Shown here piece after piece: positions 574 to 38,660 of a stretch of DNA of 64,000 bases. Position 1 is the first letter of the stretch. Each line of letters begins with the position of its first letter. The DNA lies in the NCBI GenBank assembly GCA_965112155.1, contig OZ218099.1; one strand, given 5' to 3'. Below the pieces are notes generated by a model. The model made no database searches and was not told the DNA's origin. It saw nothing but the letters and a program-made list of their open reading frames with translations. Source of the stretch: Podarcis liolepis. Its lineage: Eukaryota. The translations under genes were made by a program, and so were the position numbers.

Positions 574-2626
574 TAATAGGATTTCAACACTATTCACCCT
601 TTTTTTTCTTTTTAGTGGGGTAAGGGCTTTGCTTGCTTTCTATATGACTGGGTTTCCATGTGATATTGATGAATGCCATGACTTATACATTGCTTTCACA
701 ACTGTGAAAAAGTCACGTTAAGAAGCTGGATTTTCAGGTAGCTTGCATTTCTAATGGCTGGACCTGCTCCTACGAGATTCAACCATTGGTTAGAATAAAA
801 CTCAGTGAATACAGGATTGGGTGGCTTGCACCATATGTTGTTGCTGAAGCTGCTGGCTTGCTTACTTGCCTTCTCCCTCCATAGAGTTGTCTCCCCTATC
901 TTATGACTTTCACAGGGAGCATTGAAGTCACGGTGGTTAGATTAGAATCGGATTGGAATAATTTGCTTCTGGCAATGATAATTGGGGCCTTTGATCTTTG
1001 TTTCAATTTTTGAAACATGCATATGATTGCTGGGGAACAGGTTTTGGCCTCCAGAAGGCAACCTACAAGGCCAAATTCTTTCTTTTCTTTTTGCAGATTT
1101 AGCTGCAGCAAAAATTCCACAAATGCTTATTGTGCTAATTATAATTTTTCCCAGTCCAATCTGGCGAGTACTGGAAAATACTTTTAAATACATTGTTCTA
1201 TGTGCTCATGGTTTCTGCTTAGCAGAATAGCTCAGGAGAGAATTTAATATACTCCAGGTCTCTGCTAAGAGCTATAGGTGTGTACAAAAACTTCTGTGTG
1301 ATTTTGTCGCACTCATTGGTATGTTTCCCCTTCCCCTTTATTTTTCACATCACATCTTTCTAATCAGCTAAGTTATTTAACCAGGGAAGCATCATTTATT
1401 TTCTGTACTAGAACAAATGGGGAGCAAATGATCATAATTGTGGTGGGACTTAAAGAAACAGAGCGATGGAATTGGGATATTTTTATCCTTATTATTGGAA
1501 TAACCTGTAGTTTTAAAGGTTGTTCAGACCTCCAAGGCCTGCTTTTCTGAGCCTGTAGCTGGATGGTATTTGAATATGTGCTTTCAGAAATGAAGAGTTT
1601 GACCTTGATTTTAAGGAAACCCCCAATAATGCTGAATTCCTTTCTCTGTTCTCCATTCACCTCAGATTAATGTAGCAAAATAAAGATGATCGACATTGAT
1701 TCTGACAGGAAGACTAAGCATATACTGTAGTTGCGTAGGCAGCAGTATGGGCAAGCAGGAAGGATTAAGGTTAAAGGCCATAAATCAAAAGAAATATATA
1801 AAGACCCTTTCTGTGGCTTGGAATGTCTTGATAGAATCTCAGTTACTAATGGGACTGGGCCAGCCTCGAAAGCTTTCTGTTAACTCATGTTTCAAAATAT
1901 ACCCACACTTCATTGCCTCTCTGACAAAACAGCTCCACTATTTCACAAGCTTGGGTAGCCGCCAGCCATAGCCAGGAGCAAGTATTCCCTGATTCACTTC
2001 CCATTTGCTCTGCCAGCTCTCCTTGCAACATGTCCTTGCATCATACTCCAGCCCAGGGGTTTCTGGTGCTCTGCCATCTGTCAAATATCCAGACTAGATT
2101 GAAATTATTACACTATTCCACACTGATTCATGATCTCTCAAGGGGAGTTTGCCCATAATTAGAACATTGGAAGTTTCCTATAGGGTTGCGGAGAGATCGT
2201 GTTGACATTCTGTAAACCTTTCCCTTATTAGTCTTCACATCTTGCTGCTCTTTTCAGTTTTATGTCTGGAAAAGCAATGCTAGCCCGTGGCTGCTTAGCA
2301 GCACAGAAGATCGAACTTAAAAGAAAGTGGCATGTTTATAGAAAGGGTATTGCCTCATGCTAGTAATACTGCCTTTTGCTCCTAAAACAAAGGAAGTGGG
2401 TGGGAAGTGGGAGGTGGGAGACACCATCTGTGTTTTAACAGAGATTGAGGAGTTGCACATACCGGAGGTTTGTTTTGTTTGTTAGAAGCCTTTGAGGAGA
2501 AAGCTGTAGACAAATCAAAGGGTCTTTATTGCGAACTCCCTGAAATCCGTTTGTTCTGAAATCATGAGAAATATTTAGCGGGGGGAAAAGACCATGATGC
2601 ATCTCCTTATTTCTGGAATTTCTCAG

Positions 2627-2822
2627 GTGAAACTGGCATTGGGAAGTCAACGTTGATGAACACTCTCTTCAATACAACATTTGAGACTGAAGAAGCCAGT
2701 CACTATGAGCATGCTGTTCGCTTGCGGCCACGGACTTACGACCTGCAGGAAAGCAACGTCCACCTGAAATTAACCATTGTAGATGCTGTGGGGTTTGGGG
2801 ATCAGATCAATAAAGATGAAAG
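2627..2822 (+). CDS. SEPTIN8: Septin-8 exon (P-loop: [20 protein letters not shown]...[15 protein letters not shown])
   Basis: Acceptor tttctcag at 2626. 196 nt. Ends AG|GCAAGT (GC donor), in phase with the next exon. Confidence 0.95.
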
Positions 2823-4573
2823 GCAAGTCACTTTCCGATTTGGTGCAGAAAAGCCTGCAGTGCTTCGACGTGTAGAGGAATGTAATGTCTTGGGAATACG
2901 CTGGGCCTCACATGAGAGTGGCCATGCATAATGTGATCAGCTGCTTTGGGCGGCCTTTGCCAACCTGGTTCCCTCAAGATGTTTTGGACTACAACTCCCA
3001 TCAACCTCAGCCAGCACAGTCATTTTGGACTGCAACTCCTATCACTGGCTGGGGCCAATGGGAGTTGCGGCCCACAACATCTGGAGGGCACCAGGTTAAC
3101 AATGGGCAGCTTAGGACACAATGATTTACTCAGCTTATCCCGTTCACAGTTGGGCTTGGTGGGACATTATGTACTGAATGTTGACCCTGAACCACTGGCC
3201 TTTGGACATACCGGCTGTATTGATTATTGATTACTCAACTCGGTGGGTTACACCTAGGTTGACGCTTGAGGTGCTATTCCTCCCTTCCATTAACTGCTTC
3301 TGCCTGTCCTCCCATTGCTCTAAACAGTAAGCTAATTGGTTCTTAAGTTTTGCCCTGACTCATTTGCAAAATGGCGGCTGCTGTGCCTCCTCCAGAGTGA
3401 GGGAAATAACCATTTGGAGGAAGGAATCCTAGGTCCATAATTGTACTGAGCATCAACAGGAGAGGGCCTTTCAGTCATGCTTGTGGGCTTCCCAGAAGCA
3501 TCTGGTTGTTCACTGTGGGAAACAGGATGCTGAACTAGACGGACCTTTTAACCTGCTCTAACAGGGCTGCTCTTCTCTTCTTGGGCAGATGATAAACAAT
3601 CAGTGCTTTCTCTGTTCCTTTGTGACCCTATCACTTTGCATGTAGCCCCCACCCTTCTCTGGCTTCCATTCTTAGAAACAAGTAGCTGAGGACAGTTGAT
3701 GTCTGATTAAAATATGCATAATGTAATGCAGACTTGGACCCCCCTCCCATGCTCTTTTTCTTCTCCCACACTTTTTTTTAAAACCCCGATAATCTTTTTT
3801 AGGCTGTGTAACTGAAAACACTTGTTTAAAACTTCAACGTTTTAGTTTGTAAGGATCAAATCTCTTACCAATTTTTTACTTTTCAGGGCAGCTCGTGGTT
3901 TTCCTCAGCCATGAGGAAAACTAGCTGCAAAAAATAAATAAATACCCACCAGTTGGGACCTTATGGTGAAGAGTGGGTAATGAATTGAGTAAATGCCTAT
4001 CAAATATTTATTGTATTATACATTAATTATGTATTTCTCAGTTATATTTGTATCCTGACCTTCATCCGGGGAGTGTGGAACAGTATTTTAGCCTTGCAAC
4101 CACTCTGTACGGTTGGTTCAGCTGACAGATGGTGACTAACCCAACTAACTCTGTGAACTCCGTAAATGAGCTGCCATTGGATGCTCACTTGACATATGAA
4201 CAGTGTGAACATCCTTGGTTGTAACTCAAGTGTGTAGTGAGTAACTGTGGTTTCATGTTATCACTTCTGCTTTATAACAAAGTTATCAAGTTCAGCTCAT
4301 CAGCATAACACCCCTCCCCCCAGAAGTGCTTTTGGCCTTATTTCCAGTTTCACTTCTTGTGTGTGCACCACCTTCTGCCTAATTTTAGCTTTACCTCATG
4401 AAGTAACCTGTCATCAGTTAGCACTAAAGGTTTTTAACATCTCTTGCACTGAATTCTTATCAAAACTTGGCAGATGGGGGAGACTGGGCCATTCCTTTCA
4501 CAGCATCCTTGAAAGTGCCCAGTCATTCTTTGTTAACGTTAGCATTCAGGTTGCTAATGGAATTCGTTTTTAG

Positions 4574-4760
4574 TTACAGGCCGATAGTAGATTACATTGA
4601 CACGCAGTTTGAAAACTACTTACAAGAAGAGCTCAAAATCCGGCGTTCCCTCTTTAATTATCATGATACAAGAATCCATGTCTGCCTTTATTTCATCACT
4701 CCAACTGGTCACTCGCTGAAGTCCTTGGATCTGGTAACCATGAAAAAGCTGGATAGTAAG
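4574..4760 (+). CDS. SEPTIN8: Septin-8 exon ([22 protein letters not shown]...TMKKLDSK)
   Basis: Acceptor tttttag, donor AAG|GTATGT, 187 nt, septin sequence. Confidence 0.97.
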
Positions 4761-7700
4761 GTATGTGCTTTACCTCACACGTCCTACGAGCATTGACTTT
4801 CAATTAAGTACAAGCTTTGGTTGGCACCTTCAACCACCAATCACTGTGTAATTTAATTTATTTGCTTTAGTTTTCTGTACGCCACTTAGAGATTGTTTTA
4901 AAATATTAAGTGGCATTGAAATGGTCTAAATCAATAAATATAAATGTTTACTCACTTCTTCTGCCAAGGAGGTAAAAGACTCCCTGTTCTCAGCAGTTGC
5001 CTTAGACACTATCCTTCCCACTTCATTACATTCATTCTAGGCCACTTCAGAGTTATAAAATTTGTTGTTGTGAATGTCTCTCTTTGAGCAATCCAGAGTG
5101 CATCAACAGTGCTGAGATATGCATGGGTTGGGGAAATAGGTTAGGGGAAGGAAATCCTGTAGGCTCATGGCGTTTACGTATCACTGTTCTGATTAAAGTA
5201 AGACAGCCCTGACTATTGCGTGTGGGAAACAACTTAACAGAAGTTATAAGAAGATGGTCAACGCAGTAAATCAGTTTGTGTTAACGGCAGTCGTTCTGAT
5301 GCAGTAGTCATTGGGGTGCATTGTTCTGGTGAGTTCAGTAAGGCAGCAACCATTTGTGGCTGTAGCCAGATGTAGACCATCTTAGCAGTGCTGATAATTG
5401 CTTCCATGCAGCATGTGCTCAGCCAGCCAACTCTCCTCCTAGCTGATGACTAGGTGTGTGATGTTCAAAGTGAAAAAGCAAGTCTTCTGAAGTCCATGCT
5501 GTGAGGAGAGCTTGAGGCAGAGGGCAAAGATCATTCACGTGAAAGGATTCATGTTCAAAACAAAAAAGTTCACATTTTTATTGGGTGACCTTTTTAACTT
5601 TAAGAACGTAAAACATTTTAAATGACCAAATGATATACTTTGCTAAGGATTAATTGGAACACCGCATCTGCTGAGGAATAGAGATGAGTCACTTATATAT
5701 TTCGGCTCCATCAGCTTGAATCCTGAGCTGCATATGCTGAGCTTTGCCCACTACTTTTGTGTGTTGCTGTTTGAAGGCTATACTATATCCCCACCCCACC
5801 CCCCAGCAACCACTTCTGACACTGGCAGAATCCTTAATCCTGCATGCATAGATATTTAATCAGATTCATATGTGTATAATGCTCAAGTATGCATATGTAA
5901 TAGAAAAAGAGAGAGAGAGAGAATCAATCCCAAGTAAACATTAAGGTCTGGTTGATAGCTCCAGTTTAGTCTTTGTTGGCATATGAAGTGAGTATTTAAG
6001 ATATCGAGATCTCAAAGCATGGGGCTGACAATAAAATAGTAGAAATAACAAGTAGAAAGACAAGTGGCTAACTAGGATTGTGTGCTTCCATTGCAGAACT
6101 TTGTCATGTTTTGCTCTCTTTCATTACAGCTCACAGGAAGTTCTTTACAGGGGGCATAAATATTAATATAATAATAAACAGTACGTTTCTGGTGGCCAGA
6201 GAGGTATCTTAATTTTTCAGAATGGAGTGCCTTGGTAAAGAAAATGTTATGATTAAGTGTAGTCTGAACCTCAAAACCCAGGTCTATGGGATACGTGGGA
6301 AATAATGCTCTCAATTTCCAACTTGCTCTTTGTTCCTTTCTGAGAGCTGCTCCTGATTCAGATGTGGCTTGGATACTACATTGGCTTGACATCAAACATC
6401 TGCTTAGCAAAGATGTAGGCATTTGAACTGGCTATGCTTTGATGGGGAGGGGGGCAGCTGTTCAACAACTCTGCAATGTCAGCATGGTGATGTCAGACAC
6501 TGGGTAGACTGTCTGGGTTTCCTGTGATATTAATGTATCTGGTTCATCCAAATGACTTCACCAGGCTTTTCCAGGGTGGAGGATCATTCTCCGCAGTTCT
6601 CTCTCCCATCATGCACTGGGGTGCTGCTGAAGTCATAACCAAAGGATCTGTTGCCTACTTTATCTGATTACTTCCAGACAGCCAAAAATGGTCTTCAAAG
6701 CTGAATTACTACATTAAATAATAGATGGCTGAGATTGCACCATGTCTAGCCATTCATATCTCGACACTCACAAGTTAAAAGTATCCAACCCCGTCTCATT
6801 TACCACTTTATCTTAACTCAGCATACATTTTGGCACAGGAAAGTACAGCTCTGTTTTGGAAAACCACCTGTTTCTAAAAGGGCTTTTATGATACATGTAT
6901 GTTTCATTATGTTGGCTTCAATATTTAGCATGCTGATGTTGCATATCTTTAATTTTGTTCCATGCTTGTTCTTTCCTTGTGGTGGCTTCACCTGATAATT
7001 CAGAAGAGAGATAATGGCTTTGTTTCTAGCTCTGGAAATGGAATTGGGAGTGAAGGTCAAGAAGATGCAATTTTGGATGCAGTTTTGGGAGGACAGATTG
7101 ATTACCTGTGGGAATATTTTAAGAGAAATCCCAAGATAATGAAAAGTTGTCCAGCTTGCTCTATAATTCACAATATAGTGATGGAAGATGGTGGCTGGGC
7201 TCCAAAGAATTGAGTGGGCTTGTACAATTGGCTTGGATCAGCCAAGTGGCACATTTTACTCTTTTCAGCAGCTGACTCTCAAGCTAGATCACAAACTGCT
7301 TTTACAACTCTTTCTTTTCCAAAGCAGTTTGCACTGAAGGTGTGAGGGAAGCTGCTGTTTAAGGAAAAACAAGCCTAAAGCCTCCTTTGGGTGAACAGAC
7401 TAGTTTTGCAGTTATTTTAATCCAGGCCAGTACTGACAACTGTGTCTTCTTGATGACCCTGACAGTGCTTTGTTGCAGCAAAAGAGCAGTAAGCCATGCA
7501 CCTGCCAATTCAATGCAAATAGAATTTGTGGGAATTTTGTTCTGTAGGCAGACATGGAAAAGCCATTGTCACTCAAGTACCTGTGTGTTGGTGGGCCACC
7601 AGGTATCCAGCTTTAAGCTCCATTTCCCTGAAGTTGCCTGGCTTGCTTTTTCATGCTGCTTTTTTAGAGCGTGCTTCTCTGTACTTTTTGGAACACATCC

Positions 7701-8380
7701 ATGCTCCCCCCCCCAATAAATTCACCTTTTTAAAAAATCAGCACCTCTGCATTTCTTCAAGCTAATTGCTGGAATCAGTGAATGCATGGCTTAGCAATTA
7801 GGTTTAAGAAATAACAACATTTTAATTGGCTGCCAGCTGCTTATAAATTCCATTTGTTCACAAAGCCTGCCAGGAAATTAAAGCAAGGGGAGGCTTAGAT
7901 CTAAAGCACAACATGCTCTTTCCCAACAGTAGCATCCAATACCTACAACCTGTGTAAAGTCTTACCTGAGGCAGAGAGCTCCCAGAGTTGCACCCAAGAG
8001 GTTCAAGGGGCTGCCGTGGAATGGAAGTGGTGTTCACACACATCGTCTGTTTTCTGTTTGTATGGAGGGGGTTATGAATCCCGGCCAAAACCTCTTTTCA
8101 TTTGCCTCTTGAAAGCAAACTACTGTTATCAGACAGGATTAGAGCAGATCAAAGTAGATCTCTGCTTTACTTTATACCCATGGTACAGTCTTGCTCATCC
8201 AGATGTTTTGGACTACAACTCCAAGCTAGCTGACATACTGCAAGACCTCAGAAAAAAATAGATTTTTGTGATAGAAAGTCAATTTTTTGACACTGGTTAG
8301 ATTTAATTGTGTCACATTGACTTCACTCAGAATAGTTCTTTTTCCCCTCTTGCTTTACTTTAAAGGTCCTAATCATACTA

Positions 8381-8640
8381 CAGTGGACACTTGGGTTGCA
8401 AACATGATCCATGCAGGATGCATGTTTGCAACCCACAGCGTTCACAACCCGCAGCTGTGCATCTGCGCACGTGTGGGTTGCGATTCGGTGCTTCTGCGCA
8501 TGTGCAAAGCGTGATTTAGCACTTCTGCGCAGGCGCAACCACTGAAACCCGGAAGTAACCCATTCCGATACTTCCGGATTTCGGTGGTCCGAAACCCGAA
8601 AAAACGCAACTTGAAGCGTCTGTAACCCGAGGTATGGCTG
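8381..8640. mobile_element. Tc1/mariner-type MITE
   Basis: TA|CAGTGGACACTTGGGTTGCA...TGTAACCCGAGGTATGGCTG|TA; CpG-rich palindromic core. Confidence 0.75.
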
Positions 8641-9100
8641 TACGTACATTAATAATACTTGTAAGAATAATGTAAATTTCCTTGGCTATCTGAATGCAAG
8701 AGAATACACTGTGGCCAAGGGTGACTACTCCATGCTTGAGTGGTAACACTTGCTAGTTCAACTGTTTGATGTGACAGAACTGCATTCACAATGCTAAGCA
8801 ACATTCTGCTCTTAGCTGGTGCTCCAGACAGCTTGTATTCAGTTAGCTTTTACTCAAGAGTAGACCTATTGAAATTAATGAACAGGGCTAACTTAATTTC
8901 AACTATACACACTACTAGGAGGTTTTGAAATGGGTGGATTGGTGGCAACGGGATATTAAAGAAGAGCGGAGACCTAATTTAATGTGCTTATACAAATGAG
9001 GTTGGGGGACCCTGGTATCCTTAACACAGTGCAATTAATGACAGGCCTCCAAAACTCTTTCGGGGGGGAAATACTTCCATTGGTTTTATTTCTTTTGCAG

Positions 9101-9262
9101 GTGAACATTATCCCTATAATTGCCAAAGCTGACACCATTTCCAAGAGCGAGTTGCACAAGTTTAAGATAAAGATCATGAGCGAACTGGTTAGCAATGGAG
9201 TCCAGATCTATCAGTTCCCCACAGATGATGATGCTGTGGCTGAGATTAACTCTGTGATGAAT
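9101..9262 (+). CDS. SEPTIN8: Septin-8 exon ([13 protein letters not shown]4 motif ... EINSVMN)
   Basis: Acceptor ttttgcag, donor AAT|GTGAGT, 162 nt, AKAD motif. Confidence 0.97.
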
Positions 9263-9449
9263 GTGAGTAATGTGCTTACTGCAACAAGTTTTTATAGTTT
9301 TGTATTGATAGCAGTGACATATCAAAACTGAAGGTTGTGTGAACTGGTAGACTCTATTTGTAGTAGTGCTTTGGTGCTATTCCTCCCATTTCTCAGTGGA
9401 GCACTCCTTGTTGTATAAGGAAGCAGTGGGATCTTGTTGGGTTGGCTAT

Positions 9450-10303
9450 TGCGACGGCACGGTGGCCCTTTTTCCCCTGGCACCGTTGGGGCGCACTCAC
9501 TTAAAAATAGAATGTGCCCACCTCACAGAACGCCACTTCCACAAATTCCCTCAAACTGCTTCAGATTATCTTGTGGGGGACTTGCATGAGGTAAAACTTA
9601 ATAATTAGGAGTCTCAGGCAGGATTTGTTCAAATAAACAATAACGATTTTATTTAACAAGGAAGTTTATGAGACGAGTGGATAAAACTTAGGATACTTCA
9701 GTTTACAATGTTATTTCACTTCAAGGTTTTCTCAGTTGTTTCACACTTAATACTTTGGTTCTTAACAAGGTGGTACTTTCTGTCAGTTATACACCCCTTA
9801 GACAACCCTACTCCTGAGGTACTCCAAGTAATAGAGCCAAGGTTTCACTGGTTTGGGAGTCTTCTCATACTAGAAGAATATCTCCCCTCCTGACTGGAAT
9901 GAGACCTAAGTAAATTGTCTCTTTACAGCCTCTACTTTTCCTGTCTCAGTCTCAGCCTCCCAGTTAATTCCTGGCCTAATTACGCTTACAGGACACCACA
10001 ACACTGTCCTTCACACTAAGCTCAGAGACTTCTTTTTCTAGCTTGTGATATTTTCCTCAGAGTGGATGCTTCTACCCAGAAGCAACTCTCACTCCCTCTC
10101 TTCCTGCCTATCCTCCCACCCTCAATCCCAACCTACTCCAAAACCTCCTCCCTTTCTCCAAATCCTCTCCTTTTCAACTCCCCACCCTGAACCTCAGCCA
10201 ATCAGAGGCTGTCATACATTAATCCTTTTCTGGCATGGGGAAAAGAAAAAGAAAATACTTGGGGACCCAACCAGCCCTAGCAAAAACAAACTTTTCTGTC
10301 ACA
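9450..10303 (-). mobile_element. Solo LTR (854 bp) of an LTR retroelement
   Basis: TGCGAC...GTCACA termini, 5-bp TSD GCTAT (9445-9449, 10304-10308), minus-strand AATAAA at 9648-9653, CCAAT box near 10200. Orientation inferred. Confidence 0.75.
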
Positions 10304-10674
10304 GCTATCATCATATACAATAAATACTCATGGGTATTACCAAAATTACTTAGTACTTTCCCAAAAAATAGAATGCTGAAATGCGGTACACAAATAGTCT
10401 TACACAACCCAGTTACCTGAACTGGACACTCTTTTTAAAATGCCTCTTGCTTAAGCTTGCACTATGGTCAACTTCATAACAGCAGACAGTGCCAGACAGA
10501 GTAGAGATATGGAACATCCCTTTCACACTCAACTTTGGAATGGGGAGTGAAATTGCAATGCTATCTCTAAACATACTGTGTATGTGACAGGATCTACAAG
10601 TTGCCTCTTCCTATACCTGATTAAACTGTGGATTGTGGAAGCTGAGTGAGTAGGAATACCAGACATCCAGAGTA

Positions 10675-10718
10675 CCTTCCTTCCTTCCTTCCTTCCTTCC
10701 TTCCTTCCTTCCTTCCTT
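10675..10718. repeat. (CCTT)n microsatellite
   Basis: Direct reading. Confidence 0.95.
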
Positions 10719-11252
10719 TGACTTTGAGTTGTGTCCATATAAAGACCATGTTGGGTGGATCAATACGATTACTCTTATCTCAGATATAAGCGGTCATTGA
10801 AGCAAAACCTCTTGCTTGGGCCGTAGCTTGCCTACAGTTATTTAATGGTCAGGATTCACCCCATGAGTCCCATCTATGGAAGCCCTGAACAAGCAACGTG
10901 ATAGTATACGTCTGAGCAATGAAGAGTCAGGTGGGATATGGAATATATAATCTACCCAAAAGCATTCTTTTTGGCAAAGGTTGTTCGTGGAGAAAGTGAC
11001 TGTGTGAAATCTTCAGTTCTTGGTTTATAGTTGAAAATGCTAGGTCCCCTCCTTTGTCTTGTTTTAGTGTAACAGCAGAAGTTTTTTCTACTTATTCTAA
11101 GTTTCTTTCTTTGCAGTTCTGCTGTCAGCAAAAATGCCAATACCACAGATGTGGGAAATGTGATTCTGTGCTATGAGGAGTTGAAGTGAGGTTGAGGGCT
11201 CAAATGACATTTTATATTTTGCACTGAATTCCATGGTTATGTGTCATTTTAG

Positions 11253-11349
11253 GCTCATCTGCCGTTTGCTGTTGTAGGAAGCACAGAAGAGGTAAAGGTT
11301 GGAAATAAAATGGTGAGGGCTCGGCAATATCCTTGGGGTGTGGTACAAG
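11253..11349 (+). CDS. SEPTIN8: Septin-8 exon ([32 protein letters not shown])
   Basis: Acceptor ttttag, donor AAG|GTAAGT, 97 nt. Start of the septin unique element. Not in the ORF track. Confidence 0.97.
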
Positions 11350-12920
11350 GTAAGTCGGAAGCCAAGCCTCTTGACAGTGTTGTGTAAACTTTCCTTGATT
11401 GTTTCCTGCTCTTGTAGCTGTATGGGCTGTAGTCGTCATTATTCGTACTCGGAGTAAACCCATTGAAATGAATGGACATGACTAATGGACCATTAATTCC
11501 AGTAGACCTACCCAGAGTATGACTAGCCCAATGGGTTTACTAATGTTCAGTTTTATGCCAAAGTCAGCTTGCCCTCAGCTCCAGGGAATGTCACAGTCCT
11601 CTTTCCTATAAAAGTCTTTCCTAAAGAACATTTCTATCATGTCACCTTTAGATGGCAATTAGGTTCCCCCCCTAATTGTGCTTGGCACCATCTAATTTTT
11701 AGCACCTGGCAGTTTATTTTGATGGCTGTTCTCTGTTTTCATTGTTAGGCTGGTATTTTATTGTGTCATTATACATTTTTTTATTTTTACTGATTATTTG
11801 TCAGTTGCAGTATCTGTGGAAATGTTCCCAGGGGGGGGGGGGCTTTACAAGCACACACGAAAAATCTGCATGCTGATCTGGCAAGGCTCTGTGGTATTTT
11901 ATTTTACATTTGTTTTTGTAAGCTGATTTTCCAACAACAAAGTTGAGCTAAAAGTGGTTCCCAAGGATAGCAAAGTGTATTAAAAACAGATGCTGTTGCT
12001 ATTTTTTCATTTATTAATTGCTTCCTATGAAGAATCCCAAAGTGATTTTACAATATAATTAATACATTTATAAAACAATTGCATATATACATTACAAATA
12101 AATTATATATAAATACAAAAACAATTAAACAATACTTCAGGTGATCTATTAATATAAATCAAAAGCAGATGGTAATAATGCAATAAATACATCAATACAC
12201 AATTAAAATACAGTTGAATACAAGGATACAAAAACACCCTCATGGCCGCTACAAATTCATGCTACATACTCAACTAAGCTGCTCCTTAAACCAAGGCTTT
12301 CAAGCATAGCGGCACCAGTAGTTTTAGAAGACTGTTCCTGATTAAATTAGACAGGCACCTAAAATTCTGGTGTTTATCTGTTAAAAACATTTTTGTTTCA
12401 TCAGGTATTTTTAGAAAATTTATTCAGTTCATTGTTGGTTCTGTACTTTTTATTTTATGATGTTTTGATGATTATATATTACTTTTTTGGTGTGTACCAC
12501 CAACCACAATATTTTTGTTAGAAGCTAGTGATATATAAATACCATAATAAAGAAATGAAAAACATTTTTTAAAAAAACCAGTTTCACTCAAATAGGTACC
12601 AGACACAATCATTTCCTGCTTCCAAATAAACAAGCCTAAAACAATAAATCATCATAACAATAATATGGATGATATCCTGCATTCCATATTTATTTATACA
12701 GAGGCAGCAATCCGAAATGCAATTGCTAGAGAGTAAGCCCCTTTTGTACCCAAGGGTGACCTCTGAGTAAATTTGCATAGGATTGTGTTATAAGGTTTGC
12801 TAATCGGACGGCACGAAGCTGTCCTTCTCTTAACGGAGGAAACACTCCTTCAATTCTGCTTAGAACGTTACACCAACAAAGGAAACCCCAGGATTTTGAG
12901 TCAAGTTGGTGTGTATAAAC

Positions 12921-13173
12921 CATGGGTAGGCAAACTAAGGCCCAGGGGCCGGATCCAGCCCAATGGCCTTCTAAATCCGGCCTGCGGACACTCCAGGAAT
13001 CAGCGTGTTTTTACATGAGTAGAATGTGTGCTTTTATTTAAAATGCATCTCTGGGTAATTTGGGGGGGGGCCCTAGGAATTCGTTCATTTTGTGCCAAAA
13101 AATATAGTCCGTCCCCCACAAGGTCTAAGGAACAGTGGACCGGCCCCCTGCTGAAAAAGTTTGCTGACCCCTG
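12921..13173. mobile_element. hAT-superfamily MITE
   Basis: CATGGGTAGGCAAACT...AGTTTGCTGACCCCTG termini with exact 8-bp TSD GTATAAAC (12913-12920, 13174-13181). Confidence 0.9.
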
Positions 13174-13228
13174 GTATAAACCATCCATTTTTTCACAATG
13201 GCTACGCTCCTTCTCTTCATTTGCTCAG

Positions 13229-13397
13229 TTGAGAATGAAAGCCACTGTGACTTTGTAAAGCTGCGAGAGATGCTGATCCGTGTCAACATGGAAGATCTGC
13301 GGGAGCAAACTCACACTCGCCACTACGAGCTTTACAGGCGGTGTAAGCTAGAAGAAATGGGCTTCAAAGATACTGATCCTGACAGCCAGCCATTCAG
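13229..13397 (+). CDS. SEPTIN8: Septin-8 exon ([29 protein letters not shown]...DSQPFS)
   Basis: Acceptor tgctcag, donor AG|GTGAGA, 169 nt. Confidence 0.97.
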
Positions 13398-13674
13398 GTG
13401 AGAGAGCATCATCCTCTCCATTCTTGGTTTCCGCTGGAATACCTGTACAGGTGTGTGAAGGCTGCAAGTTCTTTCGGAATCTGGGGCACTCTTGTAAGCA
13501 GGATGACAGTAATGTGTCATGTCCTTAATGCCTCACCGCCTCCCTCTATGACACATGCATGCGCAGCACATGTACGCAGGTGTAGCTTTATAGCTGCTTA
13601 TTGTCTTCCGTTGTTTTTCAGCACCTTTTAACGTCTACATGATTTGAGGTTTGTGTCTTTTGTGTCTTAACCAG

Positions 13675-13807
13675 CCTTCAAGAAACCTATGAGACCAAGA
13701 GAAAAGAATTCCTCTGTGAGTTGCAGAAGAAAGAGGAAGAAATGAGGCAAATGTTTGTGAACAAGGTCAAGGAAACAGAGTTGGAACTGAAAGAAAAGGA
13801 GAGAGAA
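13675..13807 (+). CDS. SEPTIN8: Septin-8 exon ([44 protein letters not shown])
   Basis: Acceptor taaccag, donor GAA|GTGAGT, 133 nt, coiled coil. Confidence 0.96.
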
Positions 13808-14444
13808 GTGAGTGGCAGAGAATGGAATCTGGGCCACAGATTCATATGGCCAAAAGTATCAGGGGGTGGGTGGGTGTGAGTGTGAGTATGTATACCTATG
13901 ACACTACAATTACAATATTCCAGCACTTGAGAATCAAAGAAAATGAGAACTTCCTTGCTGGATCCGACAGAGGCCTGTCAAATCCAGCATTCTGTCTCCA
14001 TTGATATGAGCAGCCAGATCCTTCTGGGAGCATTAAAGGGACATTCATCCTGTGGGGAATGCATTAGAGGGTTAGGATTGCTCCCTAATTGTTTAATCCA
14101 TTTTAAAGGTCATCTAATCTATTGCTCTTGACTATACCTTGCAGTAGTATATTCCTTACTTTTTGTGTGTGAGAAACTTCCAATTCATTTAATAGGCTGG
14201 CTCCAACTTAGGAATTTTTATTTGATATGAAGGCTGTGGGGGAAAGTCTTAAAACTTCTTTTTAAGTCTTAAAACTTTCTTTTAAATTTTTGTGTTTGAA
14301 TTTATTAAGATCTACTCCAGGGCTTTCAGTATCTAAAACCTAGATGAAATAATCCCAAAATGACTGCATCCATGTCATACCTCCAGCATTATCTTACCCT
14401 AGCTATGAGCTGCTTCATTTTTTGTAAAAGAAACCTTTCAACTA

Positions 14445-14684
14445 CAGTGGCACCTCGTGTTACGTACCTCCCCCCTTACGAATGCTGCGGGTTACATGAT
14501 CCGCAGACCCGGAAGTAGATGCCCCTTGTTGACCTTTGCCCCAGGATGCGAGCGGAAGTTGCGCTCCGGCGGTGCAGAAGCAGTGGGAGGCGCCATTAGG
14601 GAAAGCATGTCTCATGTTACAAGCAGTTTCCTGTTATGAATGGACCTCCGGAACGGATTAAGTACGTGACATGAGGCACCACTG
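14445..14684. mobile_element. Tc1/mariner-type MITE
   Basis: TA|CAGTGGCACCTCGTGTTACGTAC...GTACGTGACATGAGGCACCACTG|TA. Confidence 0.85.
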
Positions 14685-15165
14685 TAATCATGAAGGCATG
14701 TTGCTATCCTTCAGGAGCACAAGGGGCTAATCTGACACATGAAGGTCAGGCAAGTGGGTGTCAAATAATTGTAAACCTTTGTTCTTCAGCTGGAACTAAG
14801 GGCCAGGCCATATATTAATGGAGTGGAGGAATTGCTGTTTTCACTATAGTGGTCGCTCCACTGATGTCTGTGGAAAGAACCCGCACAAGTCAGGCAGATT
14901 ATTCTTCCCATGGTGGTATGCAGGTGTATTGAGAAGCAGAATTAGTCCATCCCACATGGATCCATTACGTAGATGTTAATCAGAGCAGTGCTGGATCCAG
15001 AAGGGACACCTGTGTTTCTCGTTAGGGTTTAACTCTGCCCTCTGTGGTGACCTATAGGACACACTTGCTTGGATGGTAGTGCCCTGCTGTAGGTCAGGAT
15101 TGGGTTCTACTTCCTGGCAGTGGAGGCAGCACTGACTGGGTTTTTTCCTCCCCTCCTTTGGCCAG

Positions 15166-15356
15166 CTGCATGAGAAGTTTGAACATCTAAAAAGAATGCA
15201 TCAGGAAGAGAAGAGGAAAGTGGAGGAGAAGAGAAGAGAGCTGGAGGAGGAGATGAACGCCTTCAACAGGAGGAAAGTGGCAGTTGAAACCCTGCAGTGT
15301 CAGTCTCTGCAAGCCACTTCACAGCAGCCGCTGAAGAAGGACAAAGACAAGAAAAA
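15166..15356 (+). CDS. SEPTIN8: Septin-8 last common exon ([18 protein letters not shown]...[11 protein letters not shown])
   Basis: Acceptor ctttggccag, donor AA|GTAAGC (phase 2), 191 nt. Confidence 0.96.
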
Positions 15357-18300
15357 GTAAGCAATTTGACATGAGCTTCACTTTGTTTCCATCCTTTCCC
15401 AAGACATTCACACCCAAGTCAAGTCATCTAAAAATATTGCAACAGATGAGTTACTATTTTTTTTTTTTTTTTTGAGTGGTGGGAAGGAATGAGGAGGGGC
15501 TTAAGAAGTGGTTTAGACAATTTCCAGAATTATAAAGAAACCCCAATTTCCTGTTCTAACAGAATAAGCCAAGGAAATGTTGTATAAATTTTAGCCGTAG
15601 TTTCGCAACCATACCAAAGATTTAAGGAGGGAAAAGACCTCCATCTTAGACTAATGAAGATTGATCCAGTAAATGCCTCTTCTGGCCCCAGGATAGTCTT
15701 GTCACTTTTTCCTGAAGTGCATTAACAATGAAAACAAGCATAAAACAATTTCATACAAAAACAAGTTCATATACACACACACATATCTACACACATACAC
15801 ACACAACTAGTATTCTTTGTCTTCTGGCCACCATGGAAGGGAAATAAGAGAGTTCTATATAAACAGATCAGTATTGTTTTATGTAGTGTTGACATTAAGC
15901 ATCCCCAACAGGGTTTCTTGTTCCATGGGATCTTGAAATGCAGTTGATTTCATTTTTGGTTAGAGTAGGTTCTGTTCTCCATGTAGGTCTACTCATTATA
16001 GTGGACAAATTTAATGTTCAGGCTGCATGTTGTGTCATACCTCTGCATGAACTTGTGTGGTTGCCTTGATACAGAGTCAGACCATTAGCCAATCCAGCCC
16101 ATTACGCTGAGAAGCAGTGGCTGCCCAGAGTCTCAGTCAGAGATCTTTCCTACACTGCTGTGTGAGATCCTGATAACTGGAGATCTTACAGATAAAACTG
16201 GGAACCTCCCCTCAGGCAAAGCGTATTCTGTACCACTGAGTCATGTTTCATCCCTCCAGATAAACTGGTACATGGGACCCTAGCAATTACCTTGTTGGAG
16301 CAGATCAAAGGTCATCTAGTTCAAAGAGGGGCCCGCCATGTCTCTGGGAAGTCTAGAAAAGAGGATATTGTGGAGATACCACTTTTGATCTTTGTCTCCA
16401 GTGTCTGTTAACTGGCAGACTAAAACAGGACTTCCATATTCAAAATATATTTGTTGGATCTCATTGTAAAGCTGTCTAAAACAGTGACCACACTGCATCT
16501 TGTGATACCGAATTCCACAAACGAGTTTTCAATATCCGAATAAGCACATTTTTGTTTTGAATCAGCTGCTAAAAGTGTTTCTCCGATGTACTCTTCCGGC
16601 AGGTTATCACCTCTTTATAGCTGCTACTCGTAGTTGAGCCAGCTGCAATACAAAATGGGGATAAACAGGGATAAAAACCATGCTACTACTTTGCTACACC
16701 TGGTATTTTATACTTATTAAAATATTGAAGTTCATGGAGGTCCAGGCCTTGTTTTTGGTAACCATGCATCATAATGATAATGAAGGTGAGAATACAAGGC
16801 AAGGATTAGCTCAGTTCAAGTTTTAATTTAAGTACAGTTTCCTGCTACCTGTGTGAGATTGTTTGAAGACAATGAAATCCCTCCACTGCAAATTAATAAT
16901 TTTCCTGCTTAGAATGTACTGAAACTTCTGTGGCATATTTATTGTTCTTCTTCTTGCTAATACTTCTTTTTCTTGCTAATACCATGGAGGACGCCTGCCT
17001 CTCATCTTTAGCATCTCTTCTACTTGATCTAGGATCCAAGAGCCATAGCTTGTTTTATGAGATATACTCTGATTCACGTCTGACAGTTTTCAGTGATCTG
17101 CTGTAATGCAGTCTTTCTTTGTGATACGGTTGCATGTCCAGCCTTTGAGATTAAAGGTGTCCTGTACTTAAAAAGGCGAGGATAAAGCTGAAACGTCTTC
17201 CTCAACCTACGCTTGCCTATGAATACTTGCCAGCATTCATATGCATACCTAGCCAGCTACAGAAGTTGTGCATATCTTCTCCTTCTGGTCCATTCAAGGA
17301 CTAGTACGGCAGTTTTGATGCTTTGTTAACTCTAGAGAATGTAACATGCATTCTGGTCTCTGCTGTGGTCTGTAGCCTCCCCAGACCTCTGCCCCTGGTT
17401 TTTCTACCCTCAGTTCAGTCAGAGGCAGCTCACCTGTTCAGGTATTCAGAACCACACAGCAATAAGCCTGTGAGGGAAGAGAGCAGGACTGTCACACTGT
17501 GCTGGTACCTCCTGCCCCACACTGCCACCACTTCCCAATGCTGTCTGTGCATGTTTGCTGAGGGTTCTGGCTCACAGGGAAAGCCCACGTGTCCATCAGG
17601 CTCCTGCATTGCAGACATTCCCCCAACACAGAGACAGAATTGGAGAGAGGCTAGCATGGATGTGGAGGCAGGGCAAGGGTGCGCAGTCCTATTTTTCTTC
17701 GTCATGCAATTATAGTCATGGTTGTGAAGGCCTTTGTAGACCTGAAGTTGCTTAGCACATACGTTGATATCCTCATTCTGTTGTTAGAGGTCAGGGTCCT
17801 AGACGATGCTCAGCTGATGCTAGCTGCCAACTTTTCCAGATTCTTATTCCCAAGAGTGGGCTCACGTGTTACCTTTGTAGCATGAAAGCCACTTCTGCCT
17901 GGACCCAGGGCACTGCTAGATTAGTGACACCTGTAAACAAGGAACTCGCGTGAGTTAGGATCATGGTGGGGATCCTTCTTTCCTACTGTTGTCAGGAAGT
18001 GGTGGTGACATCACTCTACCACGTGAATGAATCCTCCAATGATAATATTGTGAGGGATGTCAAATAGCCCGCCTTGGATCCGTGATCTCTGTTAGTTGCT
18101 TATTACTGCCCAGATACAATGCACGCAGCTTGGGCCCTAGGAGTAATAATGCAGGTTTTATAAGAGATTTTTAATGATCCGTGTAATACAAGAACTGTTG
18201 TCCTTGCAGCTACAGTGTAAAAGAGAGGAATGGATGACATTCTGCAAGTGGCATATAGTGTACCAGAGCTGGGGAGGGTGCAGAAAAAGGTGTAGGCAAG

Positions 18301-33021: not shown

Positions 33022-33429
33022 TCAGTCAATTTGAGGAACAGGCTGTAATGGTGGACAAGTGCTGTTGCTTTCTTCTTGCCTCTGATCATCACTGCCACCC
33101 ATCCTGCTGGTCTGCCCAGCTTCTGGGATCTCATCTTCACTGTACAGGTATTTGAATCCATCATAGAATTCATCAGGCTGCATGTCCTCTTCATGGGTTT
33201 TGGCTCTGAGAAGTATGAAAGCTGATGGGTTTGGCCAGCTCCCTCTGGCTCCTGAGTTAATCTGTGTTGTTTGCTTCACTGTGGAATAACAGCAAGGTAA
33301 CCTTTTGTCCAAGTGAGTTTGGATGTTTTGGTTTGCAGGGTTGAATATATAAACAGTATTGGATGGTTGGAAGCCCAGGAGGTGCTGATCAACAAGCTCT
33401 TTACAGTGGATGAATTGGGTGCTGTCGAT
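33022..33429 (-). CDS. CCNI2: CCNI2 last coding exon (IDSTQFIHCKELVDQHL...DEFYDGFKYLYSED...CPPLQPVPQID-stop)
   Basis: Acceptor cattacag. Open to TGA at 33022. Contains cyclin-I-type tail motifs. Confidence 0.9.
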   Translation of the reverse strand: MDSTQFIHCKELVDQHLLGFQPSNTVYIFNPANQNIQTHLDKRLPCCYSTVKQTTQINSGARGSWPNPSAFILLRAKTHEEDMQPDEFYDGFKYLYSEDEIPEAGQTSRMGGSDDQRQEESNSTCPPLQPVPQID

Positions 33430-34395: not shown

Positions 34396-34750
34396 TAATA
34401 ATAATGATGATGATTTTATTATTTATATGCCACCCATTTGACTGGGTTGCCCCAGCCACTCTGGAAAGCTTCCAACGAAGTATTAAAACCGCAAACGTTT
34501 TTTAAAAACCTACATGTACAGGGCTGGCTTCAGATGTCTTCTAAAAGTCAGATAGTTGTTTATTTCCTTGACATCTGGTGAGAGGGCATTCCACAAGGCA
34601 GGCACCACTACTGAGAAGGCCCTCTGCCTGGTTCCCTGTAACCTTGCTTCTTGCAATGCAGGAACCAACAGAAGGCCCTCGGATCTGGATCTCACTATCT
34701 GGGCTGAATGATAGGGGTAGAGATGCTCCTTCAGGTATAATGGGCCAACC
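34396..34750 (-). mobile_element. L2-clade LINE 3' fragment
   Basis: Minus ORF 34510-34755 (RAFSVVVPALWNALSPDVKEINNYLTFRRHLKPALY) is the L2 ORF2 C-terminus; simple-repeat tail. Confidence 0.85.
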
Positions 34751-35124
34751 AACATGAGGCCATGTGAGTTTTTAAAGTTTGGGGTGTAACAAACTGTCAG
34801 AATGAGAACAGTGGTGATGCTCTATTGTTTAGAATAGAGCATCTCTGGAAAGCGTGACCCAAATTAAGCACAATGTCATGGCACCGCATAACCCAATAAT
34901 GGGGCTTGGAATGGCTGCCCTTCATCCGGACCCTAACTTTCATTACACTAATATGGAATTTTGCATCCAGCAGTGGAAAAAATGCATCCTAACAAAAGAC
35001 ACACCCGCACTCCTGAGAAGCACATGAAAAAACGTACATTAAATGGCTTTAAAGTATTTGTGAAGTTTTTCCATTTTTCTTTTTTCAGTCTTTGTGCTGG
35101 CCTCAGAGGCAGTTTGACTCCTAC

Positions 35125-35355
35125 CTGTGCTTTTTTTAGCAGATCAGTAATTACAGGAAACCAGTCAGGAGTCAGCCTCTCCAACTCTAAGGTGATGATC
35201 ACCAAAGCCAATGTGGAGCCCTTAAACTGCAATACTTGGTGGCATGCCATACAGTGCTGTAGCTGCTTGGTCAAGAATGCGGCGTGGCAGGAAGGATTCC
35301 TCTGAGGCAGCCCATTTAGTAGATGGGGCCACTTGAACATCACCATGGCATGGAA
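35125..35355 (-). CDS. CCNI2: CCNI2 coding exon 5 ([22 protein letters not shown]...[36 protein letters not shown])
   Basis: Acceptor tctctccag, donor CAG|GTAGGA, 231 nt, closely matches recalled CCNI2 sequence. Confidence 0.95.
35140..35305 (+). CDS. SEPTIN8: Septin-8 alternative terminal exon C ([55 protein letters not shown]-stop), antisense to a CCNI2 coding exon
   Basis: Acceptor tgtgctttttttag|C in correct phase 2. Peptide is collinear with the recalled C-terminus of the long mammalian SEPT8 isoform (...[39 protein letters not shown]), same start and stop. Confidence 0.72.
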
Positions 35356-36653
35356 CTGGAGAGAAGAGAAAACATTTATATCTCTCACACACACACATAT
35401 TTAAGCACACACGCACATTTATTTATATTTATTTATATATATATACATATATATATAAAAAACAGAACTGAGGTCAACTGTGAACTTTGTACGTTTTCAT
35501 ATGTCATTGACCAGAAGTGCAAACTAATCCTTATTCATGGCAGGAAACCTCTTATAAAGTTTTGTTATTATTTTTTTGTCCTGCTGTTACCATTTGTGTC
35601 GTATTTGCCAAATACTGAAATGTTGAAGCTTCTACTGAATGTAACTTAATTCTGAATTCGTTGCATTGTTCGCAATTGTCAATTCAGAAGGTTTTGACTT
35701 CTCGTTTGTAAAACTGAGTAACGGTGATAATTCAAGCCAGCAAACAGGAGAGAGAGAGAGAGAGAGAACAACTGATGATGCTTGGAAGCAGAACTAATAC
35801 AATCTCATCATCCTGGTTCTGATCAGACATTTCCCCCAAAACAAACCTAATGCCAGGATGATCCAGGAATCCACCCTTTGCTATATAGCAGGGATGGGGA
35901 CTCTGCAGCTCTCCGGATACTGCTGGACTGTAACTCCTGTCACTTCTGACCACTGGCCAGGCTGGATGGGGTTGATGGGAGCTGGGGTCCAGCCACATTA
36001 AGAGAGTCACAAGTCACCCACCCATGCTGTGAAGAGATGAACTCTGAGAGACATTATCACACGACTTTTGCCTTACTATAGCACATGGTAACTTCTTAAC
36101 GGGGAGTTTTCTTCCAGAAAACGTTTAGCAAATAAGATGTGACTTAAGTGCCAGATCAGAATGATCTAATTTGCCTAAAAATGAGGGTCAAATGTTTTTA
36201 TGCAGGGTGAGGAGTAAAGAAAAGCTGATCTGAGATGCCCCATTTGTGAAATGTAGCAAAAACTCTGAAAGCTTTTTATGTACAGTATTGAGAGTGCAGA
36301 TAGTTAGAAATATTTTTGCAGTGTATATTTAAAACAAACGGAACAAATCTCTAGTGGTACAGTATGAGCTCTTTTTAAAAGTCAATTATTAGTTGTCCTT
36401 TCAAAATGGGAGTCTACATTGTTTGTAAATCAAACTTATGGAATAGTTGGGTGTTCAAATGGAATTTCAATATCTTGAACAGTAAGTAATTCACTTCAAA
36501 AGATTTGCAGATAGTTAAGAATGAGTGGTCTGCGAGGCTAACTAGAAGGGAATGTATGCGCACCATTGCTGTTTTCTAGTCTTATTTGGTAAAAACAACA
36601 ACCCTAGTTTAGCCTTTTGCAAAAAAGAAAAAGAAAAAATGTCTAGTGCTTAC

Positions 36654-36794
36654 AATGTTTAAGAAATCGATTGATGTCGCTGTGTAAAGATCCCAGTGAA
36701 GTTTATTGAGTATAATTCTTTCCATTCTCACAATCTCAGCTGGAGAACATTTACAACCACTCTGCACTGCAAGCTTCTTTACCGATGGTATTAT
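36654..36794 (-). CDS. CCNI2: CCNI2 coding exon 4 (IIPSVKKLAVQSGCKCSPAEIVRMERIILNKLHWDLYTATSIDFLNI)
   Basis: Acceptor aaaacag, donor ATT|GTAAGC, 141 nt, RMERIIL-KLHWDL motif. Confidence 0.94.
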
Positions 36795-38424
36795 CTGTTT
36801 TAAAACAAAAGGAAAAATAATAATAATAAAAGAAGCCCAAATTCCTATGAAATTTTGTACGGTGTGATGTGTGCCCTACTATCACATAAATGAAATGCAG
36901 CTTACTCAACTATCCGCTTTGGGGTAAAAACCAAGAGGTCCTTGAAATAATTCCAATATTCATTATAGCACCATGTTCTCATATTTTAATAAAAGTAATT
37001 CCCCACCCTTGTGAATTCCTTTATGTATGTGTAAGACTAATTCCACTGGTCATGCATCTTGAGGATGTATGAAAACAACTTGCCTTCACCTTTTTTTGTG
37101 TTCTGAAACAATGGCTGGATTCTTTGAGGTTTTTTTCTCTTGCGATTTGGCTATCTTTATTGCATATTCATCTTCACTTCTAGAGTACTAACCTTAAAGC
37201 CAGAGAGGGGGACTTCTGCAGGCCAAGGGCCACATTGATCCATGGTCAACTCTCTGAGGTCCACATGTCAAAGTAGGTGAGGATGAAGTGTACAGTGAAT
37301 GTGCCCCCACTTTTTAAAAAGGACCGTGCTTGGGGTGGGGGGAGTGTCTTGAGCAAGTCACACAAAAAACTTTTGACACTCCAGAATCTCAGTAGGAGAC
37401 CTGCCTGAGTAATCAGTAATTTTATAATATGTATAAATACATAAATATAAGGGCTTGGGGTTGTTAATGAACATATTTTTGAAGGATATTGGGAGGCACA
37501 AAAACACTTTGGTATTACAGTAGAGAATCCATTCTGTTAAAAAAAATGTTTTTTTAATTTCCTTTTGTTTTTTTTAAAAAGGACAAATTTTGGGGTGGGG
37601 AGGGCAAAAATACCTCTTGGGGCCTGTGGGTAACAGATTAACCATCACTGGATTAAAGTTAAGTTTGTGACATCAACTCTAAAACATACACTGAATGAAG
37701 GCCTGGCTAAAGTCCATTATGGACATTTCTGAGGAAGTTTACTCCTGAGCTTTAAATGTCAGATCTTATTCAATAGCAGAGGCCTAATTGTATTCTAGCT
37801 TCTACAGTGACTTTGTACACATAGCATAAAATCAGGCCACTAGTACACAGTTTTTCAAGGATTCTTTGAGAAAGGAAACAATTATTATTTAGAGGCTGTT
37901 TAACTAAACAACAGAATTTATAAGAACTTGATGACACAATCAACAATCTAGCGCTCAAAGCAGAGTTCAGGATTCTTCAGCATATCCAATGCAGAAATGC
38001 CACTTAATTTATTTATGCAATGTATTTATATCCCACCTACTCTCAAGTCAGAATCCAAGGTGGCTTCCAACATTTTAAAAGCTTCATTATAAAATGCAGA
38101 GCAATAAAAATGAACTAGCTAAAAAGAATAATCAAAATTCATCACAAGACATTAAAAACCAGCAATTATAAGGTAGCCCAGTGATCACCTTCGTCTGCAT
38201 CAAGGGCTCTGCCACACTTCTGTATGCCCCATGCCTAGAAAGTACAGGTCCAAGCAGTTTTCTGTTTGCTCCACAATTTCTAAGCATGGGTCCTTTGCCC
38301 TGCTGCTTTCCCCTGGAAAACCCGCTATTTAGTGACAAATTGGACCAAACCAGATTGCCATGTGTTCCAATTTTAAGATCAGGTTTTCCTTGAGTAAGCA
38401 GTGAGGCAAACAGAGACAAGCACT

Positions 38425-38660
38425 TTGAAAACTAAGGCCTGTCTGAATAGGAAGGTCTCAGCTTGACTGTAGAAGGATAACAAAGAAGGAGCCAATCTAA
38501 CCTCTCTTGGGAGCGAATTCCACAAAACAGGTGCCGTCACAAAAAAGGCTCTGTCTCATGTCACCACCAACCATGTTTCTGATGTTGATGGGACTAAGGG
38601 AAGGTGCTCATTTTAGCACCTGAGCAGGTTTCTACAGGGAAATGCAATCTTTCAGGTAGC
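38425..38660 (-). mobile_element. Degenerate L2-like LINE fragment
   Basis: GGGAGCGAATTCCACAAAACAGGTGCCGTCACAAAAAAGGC is the reverse of an AF-V-AP-LWNSLP motif. Confidence 0.6.

Follow-up and report, generated by a model that had tools for sequence, protein, structure and literature searches.

A septin-8 alternative last exon antisense to a coding exon of cyclin I2 in the lizard Podarcis liolepis and its probable conservation as sequence coding on both strands

Overlaps in which coding sequence lies antisense to coding sequence are rare in vertebrates and most of them are of recent origin or little conserved. A survey of mouse and human counted only 28-51 gene pairs of this kind (PMC2335118). 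In the TRalpha2/Rev-erbalpha pair (THRA/NR1D1) about 67 codons are translated from both strands; expression of TRalpha2 is confined to eutherians, and the splicing that yields it probably arose before the marsupial-eutherian split and is absent in platypus (PMC4569393). Here we describe a comparable locus in a 64,000-nucleotide (nt) stretch of the genome of the lizard Podarcis liolepis (GCA_965112155.1, contig OZ218099.1; hereafter the window), where the distal alternative last exon of the septin-8 gene (SEPT8, SEPTIN8) lies on the opposite strand within the fifth coding exon of CCNI2, the gene for cyclin I2. As in TRalpha2/Rev-erbalpha, the alternative last exon of one gene faces, in antisense, a coding exon of the gene converging on it, and its splice signals are embedded in the sequence of the partner. 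Unlike in that pair, where the last coding exon and 3' untranslated region (UTR) of the partner are involved, the SEPT8/CCNI2 overlap falls in an internal coding exon, and it is conserved from teleosts to mammals whereas TRalpha2/Rev-erbalpha is far younger.

The septin exon has a well-described counterpart in mouse. Sept8 exon 10b (isoform X1) is a NOVA2-promoted alternative last exon (Yuan et al. 2018, PMC6092797). Its residues C469 and C470 are palmitoylated, as demonstrated with acyl-RAC (resin-assisted capture of acylated proteins) and a C469S/C470S mutant, and the cysteine pair forms with nearby basic residues a filopodia-inducing motif required for dendritic arborisation and spines (PMC6092797). 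The lizard exon is orthologous to exon 10b, encodes a collinear tail with the same Cys-Cys pair and then a basic residue, and likewise is a distal last exon in competition with a proximal terminal exon; unlike the mouse case, it is known here from sequence and RNA coverage. On the other strand, cyclin I and cyclin I2 are CDK5 activators (PMC5256034), and the minus-strand gene of the window, like the cyclin I2 of that study, has a Cyclin_N domain and the orthologous exon 5. Ccni2 and antisense coding are not mentioned in PMC6092797, nor septin-8 in the CCNI2/CDK5 study (PMC5256034). The SEPT8-CCNI2 overlap was not found described in full-text literature searches or in the overlapping-gene surveys PMC2330155, PMC2335118 and PMC3783845, and literature that pairs CCNI2 with SEPT8, SEPTIN8 or antisense consists solely of association and methylation studies listing both genes. 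The tail and its function in mouse are already known; the overlap with CCNI2 is apparently undescribed and is implicit in public annotations, which place both proteins on the same contigs.

The locus is confirmed as a bidirectional-coding arrangement, one gene's alternative last exon being contained, in antisense, by a coding exon of its convergent neighbour, and an earlier interpretation of the window from its letters alone (the sequence-only reading), which had placed an open, in-phase septin terminal exon wholly within the CCNI2 exon, agrees with both the sequence and the gene maps. In tblastn searches a bird SEPT8 (P0030), which carries the Pfam Septin domain, aligns with eight plus-strand coding blocks from 2626 to 15356 and, with its tail, at 35140-35302. 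The full-length cyclin-I2 of the amphisbaenian Rhineura floridana (P0284; Pfam Cyclin_N at residues 33-144, E 4.8e-22) aligns with six minus-strand coding exons at 79-94% identity. The exon-5 peptide has 177 protein matches, the named ones being cyclin-I2/CCNI2 of squamates, birds, frogs and mammals at identities of up to 92% (91% for Rhineura floridana cyclin-I2). The septin terminal exon overlaps CCNI2 exon 5 coding on coding and then crosses CCNI2 intron 4 and exon 4 as 3'UTR, and the last CCNI2 exon sits in the intron, 19.8 kb long, that precedes the terminal exon of long septin-8. We consider it very probable that the septin-8 tail exon and CCNI2 exon 5 code on opposite strands with selection on both, and have done so at least since the teleost-tetrapod ancestor.

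Both readings of the exon are complete. The upstream septin exon ends at 15356 in phase 2 (...AAG AAA AA) and is followed by GTAAGC, with the GT donor at 15357-58. Joining its AA to the C at 35140 gives Asn, then 54 open codons from 35141 and a TGA at 35303-35305. The acceptor AG at 35138-35139 is preceded by a ctttttttag run. On the minus strand an AG acceptor and a GTAGGA donor enclose 77 open codons. Since the two frames have their third codon positions in common, many third-base changes are silent in both and positions 1 and 2 are jointly constrained. Septin acceptor and T-run are the reverse of CCNI2 CTA AAA AAA (L73 K74 K75), and the septin TGA takes the last base of CCNI2 Pro17 (CCT) together with the initial two bases of Gln18 (CAG). 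A second AG lies 3 nt downstream of the first, and this NAGNAG acceptor (TAG/CAG, 35137-35142) is the reverse of the invariant CCNI2 Leu72-Leu73 (CTG CTA). Opposite any cyclin His or Gln the septin frame has Cys, Trp or a stop, the choice being set solely by the third base of the cyclin codon that comes before the His or Gln. Within the overlapped segment the cyclin lacks Tyr and has no codon ending in T ahead of His or Gln, which keeps the septin frame open. Exactly four single changes synonymous in CCNI2 would create septin-frame stops, at septin codons 33, 34, 40 and 49. The sequence-only reading had given the coincident third positions, the reversed acceptor and stop, and the number of such changes, and the codon table agrees with it on each. 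The tail encodes VEPLNC, WW and QCCSC, with the Cys-Cys codons at 35255-35260 and a Lys, as nearby basic residue, five residues further on.

One base of the exon differs between the window and the RNA. Position 35289 is A in the window and G in all four RNA runs (three organism labels), so that the A would be a private allele or an assembly error. With G the septin tail reads R for Q at the second basic residue near the cysteines, as is otherwise universal in ...WREGF, and CCNI2 Cys23 becomes Arg, as in other sauropsids.

Comparison of the proteins, with the septin exons searched separately, argues strongly that both frames are under purifying selection of their own. All constraint tests were done at protein level. 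In the septin frame eight residues (K17, K22, E26, W33, W34, C40, L43 and W49) are invariant in 47 unique tails gathered with HMMER from teleosts to mammals. They face CCNI2 Thr55, Ala/Val50, Gly46, His39, Cys/Gly38, Leu32, Thr29 and Leu/Arg23, respectively, and each depends on a third base silent in CCNI2; six of these eight CCNI2 codons are four-fold degenerate, His39 and Cys/Gly38 being the two that are not. K17, K22 and W49 are also invariant in 73-75 unique tails selected by a motif without those residues. Control sites of the same class flip repeatedly (I/M at 20, position 31, H/Q at 35), and because they vary freely the third bases must have turned over many times on the tree. The reverse test used sites with a four-fold degenerate septin codon and a two-fold degenerate CCNI2 codon. 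There CCNI2 Leu58, Ile54, Leu49, Lys45, Gln40 and Met36 are kept opposite four-fold septin codons with at most one conservative exception each, and Leu56, Leu51, Leu28 and Asn20 show one to three exceptions of third-base type among 108 sequences. In five bird species with SEPT8 and CCNI2 on one contig, the two peptides are encodable by one DNA in this phase, and a shift by one codon fails. The claim of dual coding made from the sequence alone is borne out by this selection in each frame at sites silent in the other, together with splicing of CCNI2 at both borders of the exon in RNA (see below).

The same sites bear on whether the conservation could stem from constraint on RNA, i.e. from CCNI2 splicing enhancers or from sense-antisense pairing with the septin 3' end, and not from the septin peptide. 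Such enhancers have a precedent, in that exonic enhancers are documented in the bidirectional coding sequence of TRalpha2/Rev-erbalpha (PMC4569393), and the entire septin 3'UTR is antisense to CCNI2. The constrained third bases, however, are exactly those on which a septin residue (K, E, W, C, L) or the absence of a stop depends, while third bases that merely swap I/M or H/Q vary freely. Stop and junction, moreover, are conserved to the codon, and in mouse mutation of the two cysteines abolishes palmitoylation and function (PMC6092797). Constraint on the RNA in place of the peptide is accordingly judged very unlikely.

Within CCNI2 the segment overlapped by the septin coding sequence has an entropy of 0.40 (23 of 56 columns invariant), cyclin-box exon 4 has 0.65 (7 of 47), and the 16 non-overlapped residues of exon 5 have 1.05; the shift within exon 5 coincides with the septin stop. 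In a set gathered with exon 5 as query, and taken without a CCNI control, the overlapped stretch thus appears as the most conserved part of CCNI2 covered.

The septin tail is widespread. It is annotated, with the same KKN/RS junction and the same stop, in full-length septin-8 of teleosts (as septin-8-A in Pelmatolapia, Alosa, Takifugu, Oncorhynchus, Oryzias and others), frogs, caecilians, crocodilians, many birds, platypus, echidna and placentals. A phmmer search with the 54-residue tail gave matches with E down to 1.7e-22, and the window tail aligns without gaps with placental, monotreme, bird and crocodilian septin-8. Its agreement with mammalian tails residue for residue confirms the collinear mammalian peptide that the sequence-only reading had cited, whose palmitoylated cysteines are C469/C470 of mouse exon 10b. 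A form one residue shorter (KKK/S), which fits the second AG of the tandem acceptor, is annotated in teleosts, frogs, birds and mammals. All named proteins with the tail are septin-8. The occurrence in teleost septin-8-A, frogs and caecilians dates the tail before the teleost-tetrapod split, and the earlier suggestion of an age beyond the mammal-reptile split was too modest. The tail-bearing proteins end 11-12 residues past the Cys motif in 98 of 108 cases; the other ten are open reading frame (ORF) calls that apparently read TGA as Trp. Many Logan ORF calls likewise continue past the TGA of the tail, apparently read as Trp, and were taken for gene-calling artefacts and not for loss of the stop. 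One sequence, P0015, has a degenerate tail with Gly-Phe in place of the Cys pair and several other changes; it may represent a lineage or copy with a decayed tail and was excluded from conservation counts.

Several points weigh against the dual-coding reading. When codons for the CCNI2 peptide are drawn at random among synonyms, 7.5-8.6% of draws leave all 54 septin codons open; for this single genome the openness lacks significance (P about 0.08) and is only suggestive, so significance was drawn from the cross-species data. The homologous exon of the paralogous cyclin I also has an antisense frame open end to end, as deduced from P0019 and P0020, two anonymous ORFs 47% identical to the septin tail. 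From them a cyclin-frame peptide can be deduced that reads L-L-H in place of the L-Q-H of CCNI2 and presumably matches CCNI. Unlike the SEPT8/CCNI2 overlap, their antisense frame lacks the Cys pair, with Trp-Ser or Trp-Arg instead, and has no stop at the septin position. CCNI in its turn is probably a tail-to-tail neighbour of SEPT11. Because this paralogous exon keeps the same antisense frame open, openness by itself is no evidence of use, and an open antisense frame is a property of this family of cyclin exons. Further, gathering the CCNI2 set with exon 5 as query biases the conservation comparison, no squamate septin-8 with the tail is among the matches listed, and no read or contig across the junction 15356/35140 was seen, in data whose read layout could not span 20 kb and whose loose ends were swamped by the repeat at 34400-34700.

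Most of these observations would fit a plus-strand frame that is here a conserved shadow of CCNI2, inherited from ancestors in which it served and no longer spliced onto septin-8 in this lizard: the unseen junction read, the openness at P about 0.08, a paralogous cyclin-I exon open in the same frame with no sign of use, and the lack of a squamate long isoform among the matches listed. In the window, however, nothing is lost of the acceptor, its T-run and tandem AG, the Cys pair, the stop or the phase with 15356, and the sole deviation from the consensus tail, Q for R at 35289, reads as R in all four runs. Contigs of two RNA runs end exactly at 35140, and a plus-strand transcript extends from there to about 37000, ending at an AATAAA. 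With these against it, a mere shadow is improbable.

The RNA data bear on both genes. The CCNI2 joint 36654/35355 is covered by one contig of run X1 and nine X24 reads, and the joint 35125/33429 by one X1 contig, six X23 reads and three X24 reads, all with the strand expected for minus-strand RNA. On the septin side, the X1 contig of the CCNI2 mRNA and an X3 contig both end exactly at 35140. In X3 a neighbouring contig shares exactly 30 nt with the latter and continues unbroken to 34629 on a path that does not rejoin; the end at 35140 with a 30-nt overlap indicates a non-rejoining branch at 35139/35140 and not a polymorphism bubble. At 35140 the depth increases, in X3 from 55 to 94 and in X1 from 6 to 16. 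In X3 the stretches 35140-35832 and 35920-36978 are covered by contigs, without a break over the CCNI2 acceptor into intron 4, and one X1 contig spans 35468-36631. Coverage through intron 4 ends just past the AATAAA at 36988-36993 and depth is zero past 37037, even though this region belongs to CCNI2 intron 3. Reads of the stranded run X23 between 35855 and 36445 derive solely from plus-strand RNA. From this we infer that the septin acceptor at 35140 is probably used in this lizard, with 15356 as its partner on the grounds of phase and of the orthologous annotated junction. The warning of the sequence-only reading, that similarity does not prove use in this species, is lifted in part: the RNA lends indirect support, and the junction 15356/35140 is the piece not seen in a read.

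Septin-8 and CCNI2 are convergent neighbours, and we propose the following course for septin-8 expression. The septin-8 pre-mRNA may end near the exon at 15163-15356 and yield the short isoform; readthrough of the donor at 15357 gives Lys and then TAA, and annotations of birds, turtle, frogs and mammals include short isoforms with a ...KDKKK or ...KDKKN end. Alternatively, transcription would continue for about another 20 kb, across the 3' half of CCNI2, with splicing from 15356 to the tandem acceptor at 35140/35143, and the distal exon would add a tail of 55 residues (the junction Asn plus 54 codons). The adjacent cysteines and nearby basic residues would make up the palmitoylated, filopodia-inducing motif shown in mouse and send the long isoform to membranes; palmitoylation of the tail outside mouse is suggested by analogy. 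The first AATAAA/ATTAAA motifs past the end of the short isoform, at 16716 and 17150, are candidate proximal polyadenylation sites in competition with the distal exon.

As to origin, the cyclin frame would be the older, and the septin tail would have been overprinted on an antisense frame that the cyclin exon tends to keep open. Overprinting on a cyclin exon had been put forward from the sequence alone; its direction is likely and not proven, the cyclin frame being common to the paralogous cyclin-I exon and the tail confined to septin-8, and direction and date alike stay on this comparative footing. The opposite order, a cyclin frame overprinted on an older septin tail, is extremely unlikely: the exon is collinear with the homologous exon of paralogous cyclin I (as deduced from P0019/P0020), it follows the Pfam Cyclin_N domain in a six-exon cyclin gene, and the tail is found solely in proteins named septin-8. 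A later septin tail would resemble the overprinted genes of viruses, in which a new frame arises on existing coding sequence with mutual constraint (PMC8227390). Unlike those, the present frame is antisense, lies in a large vertebrate genome without pressure for compactness, and is an exon spliced onto an old protein and not a stand-alone gene.

The overlap, held to the codon since before the teleost-tetrapod split, would make a clean natural case in which to measure the sharing of one sequence between two proteins. It is useful in that one product has a demonstrated role, in dendritic branching via the palmitoylated motif, and the partner is a CDK5 activator. The overlap may explain the unusual conservation of this part of CCNI2, and "synonymous" CCNI2 variants in exon 5 can alter or truncate septin-8, and vice versa. 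Because transcription of the long septin isoform has to cross the 3' half of CCNI2, the two genes could be coupled in expression, which raises the question of whether convergent transcription couples both in neurons. More tentatively, and as a proposal that we regard as rather doubtful in its full extent, no older exon with antisense bidirectional coding may so far have been recognised in vertebrates (this one dating at least to the ancestor of teleosts and tetrapods), and in this view a peptide born opposite a cyclin exon became a neuronal septin lipid anchor and is the main cause of the top conservation of the CCNI2 segment, and expression of palmitoylated septin-8 and of cyclin I2 would be mechanically coupled through interference or double-stranded RNA.

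Features of the septin-8 and CCNI2 genes in the window, with strand and basis
Feature	Position	Strand	Basis or remark
Septin-8 penultimate coding exon (coiled-coil end, ...KKDKDKK + AA)	15163..15356	+	tblastn with bird SEPT8
Coding part of the distal alternative last exon of septin-8 (54 full codons + TGA)	35140..35305	+	
T-run and tandem TAG/CAG acceptor of septin terminal exon	35125..35142	+	opposite CCNI2 L72 L73 K74 K75 A76 Q77
Probable septin-8 3'UTR, end approximate, AATAAA 36988-36993	35306..37010	+	RNA coverage
CCNI2 (cyclin I2) fifth coding exon, 77 codons	35125..35355	-	codons 17/18-72 overlap septin coding sequence
CCNI2 fourth coding exon (cyclin box end), antisense to septin 3'UTR	36654..36797	-	tblastn and RNA joint to 35355
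CCNI2 last coding exon	33025..33429	-	tblastn of P0284 residues 232-367; RNA joint 35125/33429
CCNI2 coding exons	41292-41179, 40544-40401, 39225-39145, 36797-36654, 35355-35125, 33429-33025	-	tblastn of P0284

Searched on their own against Pfam, the two exon peptides gave no domain match above threshold; a sub-threshold match of an exon peptide to Phage_zn_bind_3 was dismissed as chance. AlphaFold models of P0284, made from the single sequence and from a 49-sequence alignment, place helices at 149-251 with a predicted local distance difference test score (pLDDT) of only 36-63 there, which is too weak over exon 5 to assign it to the second cyclin fold. The repeat at 34400-34700, also present at about 38380-38560, is intronic, reaches an RNA contig depth of more than 8000 with hundreds of loose-end reads, and contains a conserved ORF-like stretch resembling a short interspersed element (SINE). 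A (CA)n/(TA)n microsatellite occupies 35380-35470, directly past the CCNI2 exon-5 acceptor and within the septin 3'UTR, and reads were skipped there. In CCNI2 a minor alternative donor at 35038 (four X23 reads) makes exon 5 longer by 87 nt in frame (35038-35124, minus strand). The Rhineura cyclin-I2 isoform X2 stops just past exon 5.
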